Below, in pieces: positions 3,743 to 55,252 of a DNA stretch of 64,000 nucleotides. The stretch is from sequence record ON287375.1; one strand, 5' to 3'. The notes under the pieces are model-generated. The model was not told the origin of the DNA. It saw nothing but the letters and a program-made list of their open reading frames with translations, and did no database searches. Made by a program: the position numbers and the translations under genes. Within the stretch, counting starts at the first letter, position 1. Each line of letters opens with the position of its first letter.

Positions 3743-4378
3743 ATGAATATCTTTTACAGTGTAGTTCTCTTCATCTTCTTTCTTCTTGGTTGTTTGTATC
3801 TTTATGGGGAAAGTCAAGATAAGAAAAAGGCAATTGAGAAATTGAATAGAGTTAAAGAAAGATTGGATTATAACTTTGTTCAAGAAATCAGACATAACCG
3901 TGACGCCTCCATCAAAGGAGAATATATGGAAACTGTTCTGAAAGTGATCAGTATAGTTAAGCGTGAAGAAGATGCAACAATTGGGGTCCAGTTTGATACT
4001 CTTGATCGTTCTGGTTTTGTTGAGATCATTATGACATTTAAAGATGTCAAAGCAGCTTACTATTTCATCCCCCCATTTAGCAATGAACTGAGAAGTGAGA
4101 TCACCCGTTCTCGTAAAAGTTTGATGCGTAATGAGATTGACTTGATGCTTCGTATAGCTCAGGAAGATCTAACGCTGGCTGTTAGTAATGGTCAAATCGA
4201 TAAAGGTCATCATTTAACCAGGGATGATTTGAGACCTATCTTGATTGATCTCACGAATAAACACAAACATGTTATATTCGTAGATTTCAAAATCTCTTAC
4301 GATGCGGTAATGATTCGCATCCATCTTAAGTCTGACTACTCCAAAACAGTAGAACAGATCATCCCTATTCGTAACTAG
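3743..4378 (+). CDS. Bitopic membrane protein with an apparently duplicated soluble domain
   Basis: N-terminal IFYSVVLFIFFLLGCLYLY followed by a basic stretch (KKKAIEK). Confidence 0.85.
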   Translation: MNIFYSVVLFIFFLLGCLYLYGESQDKKKAIEKLNRVKERLDYNFVQEIRHNRDASIKGEYMETVLKVISIVKREEDATIGVQFDTLDRSGFVEIIMTFKDVKAAYYFIPPFSNELRSEITRSRKSLMRNEIDLMLRIAQEDLTLAVSNGQIDKGHHLTRDDLRPILIDLTNKHKHVIFVDFKISYDAVMIRIHLKSDYSKTVEQIIPIRN

Positions 4379-4387
4379 GAGTTTAGA

Positions 4388-4756
4388 ATGAGTTTTATTG
4401 AGATGTTACCATATGCTGCCATTATTGCAGTACTTATTCTTTTGAGTATCTCCGTCTATCGATCAGTTACTTTAAAGAAAAGAGTTAGCTCTGCCCATAA
4501 GTACACTCAGTTGAGTGATGCCCGTATCATGTTAGTCATGATGTTGAATCGACTGATTCATGATGATGGTGAAATAACCGAAGAGTACCTGGATAAGTTC
4601 TGCAAGGCAGTTAAGGAATATTGCCCGACTGTCGACTTCAAAGTAGAAGTAGTTGCAGAAACATTCCAATGTCGTCTCAGTATCGGTAAATACTTCGTTA
4701 CTGTTGATGGTTACCTTAAACCACCCCATGACGGAAAACCTTACTTTATTAAATGA
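4388..4756 (+). CDS. Bitopic membrane protein, 122 aa
   Basis: N-terminal AAIIAVLILLSISVY then KKR; RBS AGGAG. Confidence 0.85.
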   Translation: MSFIEMLPYAAIIAVLILLSISVYRSVTLKKRVSSAHKYTQLSDARIMLVMMLNRLIHDDGEITEEYLDKFCKAVKEYCPTVDFKVEVVAETFQCRLSIGKYFVTVDGYLKPPHDGKPYFIK

Positions 4757-31245: not shown

Positions 31246-31653
31246 ATGTCCAAAGGTGTAGTGGGAACGATGGATACCGTAGGGTTTATTACCGAACCCA
31301 CCATCAAGATAGATAGACTTATTGCATACTGGTTTGCTAACCGTATTGACCAATGTCTCATACTCCGTAACATTCACTCTTATCAGTACGTCATCGCCAA
31401 ACACCAAGACGATAAAAAGAATGAAGACAAGTTACTGGAAGATATAAAAAATAACCTTCAGGCATATTTACTGGAGTGCTTCGAAGGGTGTTCTGTTGAC
31501 GCCTGGGCGAAGCGTGATAATCCTGAAGATAAAATGTTTACCTTGGTACTCTCTGGTGTTGTTTTCCAAGATGGCAAGGAATATGAACTCAGTAACTCCG
31601 TTCTGATTAACGGTAGTACTTATGAACTCATTGATAAAGGTAGAGGCGGTTAA
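31246..31653 (+). CDS. Conserved chimallivirus hypothetical protein, 135 aa
   Basis: RBS GAGGAA; core-block position before the nuclease. Confidence 0.8.
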   Translation: MSKGVVGTMDTVGFITEPTIKIDRLIAYWFANRIDQCLILRNIHSYQYVIAKHQDDKKNEDKLLEDIKNNLQAYLLECFEGCSVDAWAKRDNPEDKMFTLVLSGVVFQDGKEYELSNSVLINGSTYELIDKGRGG

Positions 31654-53198: not shown

Positions 53199-54812
53199 AT
53201 GTCTGAGAATATTCCTCAAACTGAAATGCAGGAAAACGTGAACAAGGAAGCAGCAATCATTACGCTTACCAATGCTCTCGTTGGTCCAGCAGATGACTAC
53301 GATCCTTCACTCCCACTCTTCGTCGGTACTCTGAAAGAAGAACACGAAGCCATCTACAAAACTGCAGTGGCCTTCCTGGGCTGGCGTGATGCAGCTGCCG
53401 CTGGTGAAGAACGTCAAGCCAACGTTCTGAAAGATCGTTATGAAGAACTTCGTGAAGCTCACTTTGAAGGTGTGGAAGAAGAACTGCTTGGTAACATGCT
53501 TACCAACTACTTCCGTTTCTACTTCAATGGCTTCGATCGTGGTCTGGTCCGTAATGCTACAGTAGATGTGGTACGTGACCGTAAACTGGTCAACACTGTT
53601 CCTCTTAAGAATGGTGGACGCTTAGGTCTGATCTCAGCTATCACTCCTACCGTTAAGAGCGAGATGGGTGTGCGTGAACGTATGCGTCGCACATTCCTGA
53701 AAGCATCAGGATCTCCAGATAGCTTTAACGTTATCTTGGCTAACTCACTGATCTTCCTGCGTGTCAAGATCCCTACTCCGCTGGATCTGGTTCGCTTGAT
53801 CAACGATGTGGCTACTAAGCTTCATATGTACGGTGAACATTATAACCAAACTTCCATTCACTTGGAACGCGCTGGTATCAGTCAGATTCTGATTGACTTC
53901 ATGTTGGATCATGTTAGCTACCATAGTGTTAAAGGTATTGATGACCCAATCCAGCTGAAGAATTATATCCTGTCTAACGACATTAACCACATGGCTCAAG
54001 CTCTGTTGAAAATCACTTCTCCTAAAGGTGTGACTTTCCGCATGAACTGCCTGGCTAATAAATGTGGTTGGTCTGCTAACAGTGTTATTGATCCAGCTAA
54101 TATGCTTCTATATGTTGAAGAAGATCAACCAGAAGAACGTCGCACTCTTCTGTTCAAACTGGTTAACGAAGGTCTGAAGTTATCTCCTGAAGATCTGGCT
54201 AACAACCCTCCTGTCTATAAAGACAAAGAAGGTAACGTGCTGGATAATAAAGTAGAACTCACTGAAGGTAATGGTCGTCTGATTATTGATGTACCTTATA
54301 TCTCTGAGTACTTTATGGCTTATGATGAGATGGCTGCTCGTATTAACCCTGAGTTACGTGAGCTGGCTGTTAAATTCGCTAACCCGAAAGTGTTTGATGA
54401 AAAACGTCGTGAGTATCTTGCTCAGATGCGCGGTCATGAATATATCCAATGGTTCCGTGCCATGGAGTTCGATCCACCGGCTGAAGCAGAAGGTACCAAA
54501 GAAGTTATCTATCGTGAAGAGAACCCGAAAGAGTTCGATGAAGGTCTGATGGATATCTTCAACAAAGACGATCAAATGTATTATCGTGCCCTGGAGAAAG
54601 TTATCACTATTGCTCCTCGCATGTCCTATACCTTTGTCGGTATTTGTGATGATGAATGCCCTAACTGTAAGAAAAAGTCAGAAGGTAAAGATCAGGAAGA
54701 ACTTCACTCGTTCACCCCAATCGATCCTATTCTGAATTTTTTCGCCCATACCCGAATGATGATCTCAATCAGAACCGGTCAGCAGAGTTTACAAGAGGAC
54801 GGTCTTTCTTAA
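53199..54812 (+). CDS. Conserved core protein with Cys pairs, possibly tail/baseplate assembly-related; ends near a slippery site
   Basis: CLANKC and CDDECPNC motifs; TPIDPILNFF, with NFF encoded by AAT TTT TTC. Confidence 0.8.
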   Translation: MSENIPQTEMQENVNKEAAIITLTNALVGPADDYDPSLPLFVGTLKEEHEAIYKTAVAFLGWRDAAAAGEERQANVLKDRYEELREAHFEGVEEELLGNMLTNYFRFYFNGFDRGLVRNATVDVVRDRKLVNTVPLKNGGRLGLISAITPTVKSEMGVRERMRRTFLKASGSPDSFNVILANSLIFLRVKIPTPLDLVRLINDVATKLHMYGEHYNQTSIHLERAGISQILIDFMLDHVSYHSVKGIDDPIQLKNYILSNDINHMAQALLKITSPKGVTFRMNCLANKCGWSANSVIDPANMLLYVEEDQPEERRTLLFKLVNEGLKLSPEDLANNPPVYKDKEGNVLDNKVELTEGNGRLIIDVPYISEYFMAYDEMAARINPELRELAVKFANPKVFDEKRREYLAQMRGHEYIQWFRAMEFDPPAEAEGTKEVIYREENPKEFDEGLMDIFNKDDQMYYRALEKVITIAPRMSYTFVGICDDECPNCKKKSEGKDQEELHSFTPIDPILNFFAHTRMMISIRTGQQSLQEDGLS

Positions 54813-55252
54813 GTGACTCTGATTTAGACCCTCGTGTTCTGAACCGTTGCAGTGAGTTGTTCATTGCAGCAGCCAAAGAAAAAGATCATGTTAAATTAGC
54901 CGTCTTGGAAAGACGGCTTTTCATGATTAAATATGGGTATATCTCTGAACAGGAATCGATGAGTTCCCATTTGCGGTATAACACCAATACCAGGGATTTC
55001 TTCCATCCATGGTCCGCAAAGATAATTGGTCATACGTTCGGGGTAAGGGAATATAGTAAATTCATGCCTTTCAAAGATTATCTTGAAATGCCTGTGGATT
55101 TTATAGAGGACTTCATTGAAGGCTTAGTTGAAGGCGAGCAAGCTGCTATTAAAGCTAAGATGGACGCCGTCAAACGTGAAGCTACTCGACAAGGTGGTAA
55201 TGGTGACCCTCAGAAGGCCGCCATTGCTTTAGCTCAAAAGAGTAAAGGATAA
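54737..55252 (+). CDS. -1 frame ORF, probably expressed as a frameshift extension of 53199 (fusion about 684 aa)
   Basis: Frame open from 54689. No ATG/GTG/TTG before an RBS-less TTG at 54857. T TTT TTC heptamer at 54737-54743. Confidence 0.65.
   Translation, partial: FFRPYPNDDLNQNRSAEFTRGRSFLSDSDLDPRVLNRCSELFIAAAKEKDHVKLAVLERRLFMIKYGYISEQESMSSHLRYNTNTRDFFHPWSAKIIGHTFGVREYSKFMPFKDYLEMPVDFIEDFIEGLVEGEQAAIKAKMDAVKREATRQGGNGDPQKAAIALAQKSKG

Follow-up and report, generated by a model that had tools for sequence, protein, structure and literature searches.

The locus described here raises the question of whether two adjacent genes of Serratia phage vB_SmaM-Yubaba, both annotated as encoding hypothetical proteins, are in part translated as one. 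The window, i.e. the whole stretch of DNA that was analysed, comprises 64 kb of sequence record ON287375.1, the record of this phage, which the queried region matched at 100% identity. An initial annotation of the window had proposed that a programmed -1 ribosomal frameshift joins YUBABA_02530, a gene for a protein of 537 amino acids (aa), to the next open reading frame (ORF). This proposal is supported by conservation across related phages and by suppressed synonymous change where the two frames overlap, and we consider it likely, on the sequence evidence set out below, that a -1 frameshift is programmed family-wide and gives rise to isoforms of ~537 aa and ~684 aa. The features on which the argument turns are the following:

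53199..54812, + strand: zero-frame gene YUBABA_02530, 537 codons, PHROG 4585, annotated as hypothetical protein.
54737..54743, + strand: slippery heptamer T_TTT_TTC, in phase, with X at codon position 3.
54737..54812, + strand: dual-coding overlap, made up of 25 codons of each frame, the last of the zero frame (stop counted) and the first of the -1 frame.
54737..55252, + strand: -1-frame extension, 171 codons plus stop, running through the end of the downstream gene.
54813..54922, + strand: stretch that is intergenic in GenBank; by substitution pattern and stop counts it is coding in the -1 frame, and it has no conserved start codon.
54923..55252, + strand: downstream coding sequence YUBABA_02540 (GenBank), 109 aa, PHROG 19747, hypothetical protein.

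At the slippery site the zero frame reads AAT TTT TTC, the first T of T_TTT_TTC occupying a third codon position, just as the initial annotation had stated. The zero-frame stop codon ends 76 nucleotides (nt) past this T. The coordinates of the ORFs likewise confirm the -1 frame as open over 54689–55252. Since the ORFs of at least 100 aa in the window contain 30 in-phase X_XXY_YYZ heptamers, such a heptamer by itself is weak evidence. Runs of at least six T occur seven times on the + strand of the window, which has a G+C content of 41%, and the run at 54737 is the sole one in phase within a long ORF. The seven runs are located at 103, 16621, 22028, 29889, 31197, 54737 and 56851; those other than 54737 are 6–9 nt long, and none of them lies in phase in an ORF of at least 100 aa. 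Coding sequence seems to avoid homopolymers. By the measure of sequence comparison, it is conservation that lifts the heptamer at 54737 far above chance level.

For this comparison, 39 homologous loci were collected from more than 20 genera, ranging from phiKZ-like phages and PhiPA3 to SPN3US-like phages, EL and a Halocynthia phage, and the two frames were queried and aligned separately throughout. The isolates were Yubaba, Sureiya, N1M2, SXP01, OBP, Survivor, pEt-SU, Kc263, AH04, ZPAH34, AhC3_1, AVP1, D6, RisingSun, EL, Aphrodite1, PDCC-1, Miami, FishSpeaker, PhiPA3, PA7 (genus Phikzvirus), SPLA5c (genus Seoulvirus), RSF1, LucasX, MadMel, Moabite, Asesino and Halocynthia phage JM-2012; the remainder were 11 metagenomic or assembly contigs. 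A run of six to eight T was present at the same place in all 39 loci, at two phenylalanine (Phe) codons that follow a conserved (I/L)DP motif, and the zero-frame stop ended 55–85 nt from the run (up to ~120 nt in Moabite). In every locus the downstream gene was in the -1 frame, and this frame was open from the T run to the end of that gene, measuring 156–182 codons in the 27 closer loci. The check across Chimalliviridae that the initial annotation had named beforehand thus returned the T run together with the open -1 frame without exception (39/39), and neither non-slippery Phe codons nor stops in the -1 frame turned up in any of the loci examined. A T preceding the two Phe codons completed a perfect heptamer in 37 of the 39 loci. 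Depending on the lineage, the codon ahead of the run encodes asparagine, threonine, serine, glycine, alanine, valine, isoleucine, leucine or tyrosine; as its amino acid varies, its final T is evidently kept at the nucleotide level. In Kc263 the second Phe is replaced by leucine (TTA), and the run is still kept. Furthermore, a tblastn search with the -1 piece alone aligned 36 phage records from its first residue onwards in one ungapped piece.

The initial annotation had also held that the -1 frame is coding upstream of any usable start codon. Between the heptamer and the annotated ATG 54923, this frame indeed contains no ATG, GTG or TTG other than TTG 54857 and TTG 54905, neither of which pairs with the anti-Shine–Dalgarno (anti-SD) sequence. 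TTG 54857, which reads CTC in N1M2, was therefore rejected as a start, and the ATG annotated as the start in OBP and SXP01 reads AGT in Yubaba. The position of the first possible start varies between loci and is not conserved, the extremes being 31 nt ahead of the zero-frame stop's end and 134 nt past it. Over the 1207 -1-frame codons that separate the heptamer from the first ATG, GTG or TTG in the 27 closer loci, there was not a single stop, compared with 143 stops in the third frame over the same stretches. In 12 of these 27 loci a -1-frame stop is positioned four codons upstream of the run, which therefore leaves no room for an upstream start. The substitution pattern agrees with the stop counts in backing the claim. 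Between Yubaba and N1M2, substitutions in the gap 54813–54922 were distributed over -1-frame positions 1:2:3 as 2:4:18, and the sum of 12 pairs gave 165:130:267; for comparison, the undisputed downstream domain gave 341:244:660. Changes in the "intergenic" gap thus fall mostly on third codon positions of the -1 frame.

In the overlap itself, both frames have left their mark. Among pairs sharing the amino acid, synonymous-codon identity was 0.72 in the last 25 zero-frame codons versus 0.49 in the remaining gene. Codon usage at individual overlap positions, given with that at positions outside the overlap where the same amino acid could be compared, was as follows:

Asn513: AAT in 18/18 sequences.
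Phe514: TTT in 26/26; outside the overlap, Phe505 is TTC in 10 and TTT in 9.
Asp516: GAC in 17/17; outside the overlap, Asp509 is GAT in 15 and GAC in 9.
Thr518: ACC in 20/20; outside the overlap, Thr506 uses four codons.
Gln532: CAA in 12/12.
Glu533: GAG in 20/20.

The codon before Phe514 ended in T throughout, though it encoded N, T, S, G or A. Third bases in the overlap are fixed because each is at the same time the first base of a conserved -1-frame codon; in the alignment of the -1 piece, the prolines at positions 4 and 6 (P4, P6) are invariant. Between Yubaba and N1M2, a stretch of 64 nt in the overlap is free of substitutions. The zero-frame tail past the run is conserved as well; it ends at a conserved distance and was modelled by AlphaFold2 as a helix, with a predicted local distance difference test score (pLDDT) of 72–82 over the last three 10-residue blocks. 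Judged from these alignments, the site is conserved beyond the needs of the amino acids that it encodes.

We propose that a fraction of the ribosomes, with the Phe codons of T_TTT_TTC in the P and A sites, slips back by one base. The slipped ribosomes would pass the zero-frame stop in the -1 frame and translate the whole downstream ORF. Two products with the first 515 residues in common would result, a major one of 537 aa and a minor one of ~684 aa, the latter carrying a helical extension of ~169 aa. Because no stimulatory RNA structure is predicted, the efficiency of slippage is probably low to moderate and fixed, which would keep the two forms at a constant ratio. The site would be ancestral to the phiKZ gp77 family throughout Chimalliviridae, and in some lineages the downstream ORF may in addition start independently at a conserved methionine. 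That the ribosome and not the RNA polymerase slips, and likewise the ratio of the forms and their function, we infer.

The observations that weigh against this proposal concern the kind of evidence, the stimulators, two imperfect heptamers and signs of independent translation of the downstream ORF, among them a clade-specific hairpin. Frameshifting is strongly supported, the support being comparative and drawn from sequence throughout. Candidate stimulatory structure was lacking in Yubaba (z = +0.61 versus shuffles) and in the 70 nt past the run of 33 loci (mean z = +0.25, none below -2), pseudoknots being outside both assessments; a scan against Rfam gave no match, and no SD-like stimulator was seen upstream of the site. 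The folds and the Rfam scan agree with the initial annotation, which had seen no strong stimulatory structure. The position of X is imperfect in 2 of the 39 loci, with C in an EL-like contig and G in PhiPA3, and both loci still keep six T. These six retained T and the lack of a ribosomal stimulator speak for transcriptional slippage, in which the phage RNA polymerase would stutter on the run of six to eight T and add one U, yielding the same long isoform. The homopolymeric nature of the conserved element, which comprises seven or eight T in many lineages, points in the same direction. However, the Yubaba clade has only six T, which is short for efficient polymerase slippage, and in 37 of the 39 loci the third base of the preceding codon is a T, which lengthens the run on exactly the side that permits re-pairing in the P site. 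The sequence is compatible with both mechanisms; ribosomal slippage is favoured, and we regard slippage of the polymerase as improbable.

Less probable still is the absence of any recoding, with the downstream ORF translated from a start of its own only (ATG 54923, TTG 54857 or a non-canonical codon) and the conserved overlap serving as a signal in RNA or DNA, for instance a promoter or processing site. In keeping with independent translation, every GenBank record inspected lists two separate genes without a slippage join. Of 20 closer relatives, 18 keep a methionine at or adjoining 54923 (residue 63 of the -1 frame), which may initiate a third, short product internally or may just be a residue of the protein core. 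Moreover, in AH04, OBP, SXP01, RSF1 and LucasX the zero-frame stop is shortly followed by an ATG, from which the downstream protein could be made on its own. Some close relatives also carry a hairpin just upstream of the ATG, which in Yubaba takes the following form:

54899..54922, + strand: G+C-rich hairpin with an 8-bp stem and a 3-nt loop, followed by TTTTC; it is located within the -1 ORF and abuts ATG 54923.

SXP01 and a contig of assembly GCA_007314255 retain this hairpin through compensatory base changes. In this clade it may act as an attenuator or terminator, or it may regulate the internal start; a terminator scan did not list it. As it is absent from most other lineages, it stands outside the general mechanism, and it was rejected as a general element because it is confined to one clade. 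The contig in question (GCA_007314255.1, contig AAHPQS010000007.1, 267 kb) is Yubaba-like and of jumbo-phage genome size; it belongs to an assembly of Salmonella enterica serovar Saintpaul and is probably a co-sequenced or carried phage. Translation from separate starts only would leave unexplained why the -1 frame is open, with its third-position pattern, upstream of every possible start, why the -1 register is fixed in 39 of 39 loci, why a variable codon retains T at its wobble position, and why the tblastn alignments to 36 records begin at the first residue of the -1 piece. In addition, SD pairing of the candidate starts is poor or absent (at -3.3 kcal/mol, ATG 54923 pairs with the anti-SD sequence more weakly than any other of the 11 annotated starts in its vicinity), and in 12 of the 27 closer loci the -1-frame stop four codons before the run bars an upstream start.

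There is next to no chance that a single gene was split by a homopolymer sequencing error, common as such errors are in these runs, or by a recent frameshift mutation: the same arrangement recurs in 39 independently sequenced genomes and contigs, both frames are under selection, which disfavours artefact and decay alike, the zero-frame tail has a helical model and is conserved, as is the distance at which it ends, and single-ORF homologues are missing both from 37 close relatives and from the 150 matches listed of 810. The 37 close homologues measure 527–559 aa, and no fused form is among them. The 810 family members came from a profile search of 1.84 billion representatives. Among the 150 of them listed, none carries a C-terminal fusion, the family match extends to a few residues from the C-terminus, and the few long members have their additions at the N-terminus. 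The clusters of distant members carried no names, and a single-protein scan of IMG/VR yielded no relatives.

Turning to the possible function of the frameshift products, the cysteine pairs noticed in the large upstream partner by the initial annotation proved to be invariant. Four cysteines (C284, C289, C487, C490) are present in all 42 homologues aligned, as C-x4-C and C-x2-C motifs that are ~200 residues apart; this pattern is suggestive of a structural zinc site within the phiKZ gp77 family. AlphaFold2 gave a confident model of the 537-aa protein, with a pLDDT of 80.6 and a predicted template modelling score (pTM) of 0.81. The protein had no match in Pfam, among PDB sequences or among PDB folds, and PHROGs of unknown function were its only assignments. 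For the downstream product, too, Pfam yielded nothing useful and its PHROG is of unknown function. The extension likewise had no PDB-sequence match; its model is helical with a disordered linker and, at a pLDDT of 54, of low confidence and too poor for a fold search. Foldseek against BFVD matched the 537-aa model to its jumbo-phage homologues and, more weakly, to entries named "Baseplate hub assembly protein, bacteriophage T4-like" and "Baseplate hub assembly chaperone" (E values 1e-3 to 3e-3, probability 0.99–1.00, template modelling score on the target 0.46–0.54). In the T4 record the product name "baseplate hub assembly" protein belongs to gp51, and no solved structure exists for a fold comparison. 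Profile alignment with hhalign was not significant either for T4 gp51 (probability 10%, 12 columns around a CPxCKK motif) or for T4 gp26 (probability 6%), and the cysteine patterns of gp51 and the 537-aa protein differ. The structure search suggested by the initial annotation thus gave its hub-assembly matches among predicted models.

Two further observations bear on the role of the protein. OBP has a neighbouring product annotated as virion structural protein, a label that the 537-aa homologue does not bear. The Churi homologue is among the proteins seen in early-infection proteomics (PMC11849849), a detection that fits poorly with a late assembly factor. The 537-aa protein may be a non-virion assembly factor with a fold related to that of the T4 gp51-type baseplate hub assembly protein.

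The initial annotation had compared the gene pair to tail-assembly chaperones. In lambda (gpG/gpGT) and P2 (gpE/gpE+E'), a -1 slip near the 3' end of a gene appends the product of the next ORF. What is conserved in this slip is its position, not its sequence; no strong structure stimulates it, and its presumed role is to set the ratio of a short and a long form. The Yubaba locus shares with these systems the heptamer near the 3' end of the upstream gene, conservation by position and the lack of a predicted strong structure, and it would share the C-terminal extension by the next ORF and the fixed ratio. It differs from them in its upstream partner, here a 537-aa Cys4 protein instead of one of roughly 100–150 aa, and in its neighbours, which are not tube or tape-measure genes. 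Moreover, no match of the Yubaba proteins to chaperone families was found in Pfam, PHROG function or PDB. Membership in the G/GT family therefore fails on size, synteny and similarity. What stands of the comparison is the Foldseek match to models of T4-like hub assembly proteins; sequence similarity and tube or tape-measure synteny do not bear it out. As a structural lead, the analogy is weakly supported by predicted models and offers a reasonable model in which a short and an extended assembly factor are made at a fixed ratio. It is possible, if rather doubtful, that the T run is an ancient universal signal for fixed-ratio isoforms of a zinc-binding, gp51-like baseplate or tail assembly factor, i.e. 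a counterpart of G/GT; on the same tentative footing, this counterpart would be built on an unrelated, much larger protein.

Other known cases resemble the locus in part. In T7 10A/10B, ribosomes slip into the -1 frame at Phe codons close to the end of the gene, which generates a minor, C-terminally extended isoform. Yubaba would share the Phe-codon slip and the minor extended isoform; the T7 extension, however, is short and not a separately annotated conserved gene, whereas here a family-conserved ORF of ~170 codons with its own PHROG is appended. For E. coli dnaX, recoding at a homopolymeric heptamer sets the ratio of tau and gamma, which have a common N-terminus. Again the homopolymeric heptamer and two isoforms sharing their N-terminus would be alike. 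In dnaX, by contrast, the product is shortened and an upstream SD-like element and a downstream hairpin are involved; in Yubaba the product would be lengthened, and such stimulators were not found. With T4 gp51 the likeness consists of the BFVD fold matches of the 537-aa model, which compare predicted structures only; gp51 differs in having 249 aa and no known frameshift. T4 offers a side observation of its own: in its record, an in-frame 26' is nested inside the baseplate hub gene 26 (3803–4429 of the T4 locus), giving two hub-related products from one locus. No similarity between T4 26/26' and the Yubaba proteins was found.

On the sequence evidence, the Yubaba site therefore appears to represent a known kind of recoding that had gone unannotated in the records inspected. 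The initial annotation had named no earlier description of it in nucleus-forming jumbo phages, and full texts on Chimalliviridae, phiKZ or jumbo phages, searched for reports of frameshifting, gave nothing relevant; the "gp77" of the Goslar and PhiPA3 papers denotes different proteins. If the proposed frameshift is real, every nucleus-forming jumbo phage would make an isoform of ~680 aa, including phiKZ, PhiPA3, SPN3US-like and Goslar-type phages, which serve as therapy or model phages. The isoform would be absent from the annotations inspected and likewise from any proteomic search database that draws on annotations of this kind, and the short downstream "hypothetical protein" would be mis-delimited in most lineages. 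The finding provides a handle on two uncharacterised core genes, and it would add a deeply conserved case of structure-independent -1 frameshifting on a U run. It bears on the stoichiometry of what may be an assembly or early-infection factor in phages whose tail genes are scattered. For metagenomes, the combination of T run, -1 register and open frame offers a simple marker for annotating the family, which counts 810 cluster representatives.

As to the surroundings of the gene pair, the next gene after YUBABA_02540 is YUBABA_02550, annotated in GenBank as encoding a hypothetical protein. The neighbouring products are, according to the same annotation, a homologue of the virion RNA polymerase beta' subunit, a virion structural protein, hypothetical proteins and a DNA polymerase, so that the initial annotation was right in seeing no tube or tape-measure gene nearby. 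According to a note in the PhiPA3 record, the 537-aa protein corresponds to PhiPA3 gp074, phiKZ gp077, 201phi2-1 gp136 and EL ORF047; the 537-codon gene is therefore common to nucleus-forming jumbo phages.

Annotation of the downstream gene varies among the relatives. Its annotated lengths range from 93 to 182 aa, the extension without a start being treated inconsistently by gene callers. In Erwinia phage MadMel (2517–3065 of the locus), the downstream coding sequence is annotated as starting within the upstream gene, with an overlap of 136 nt in the -1 frame. Elsewhere in the Yubaba window, a heptamer A_AAA_AAT is in phase at 31446 in an ORF on the + strand (31246–31653), 69 codons ahead of the stop of this 135-codon ORF.

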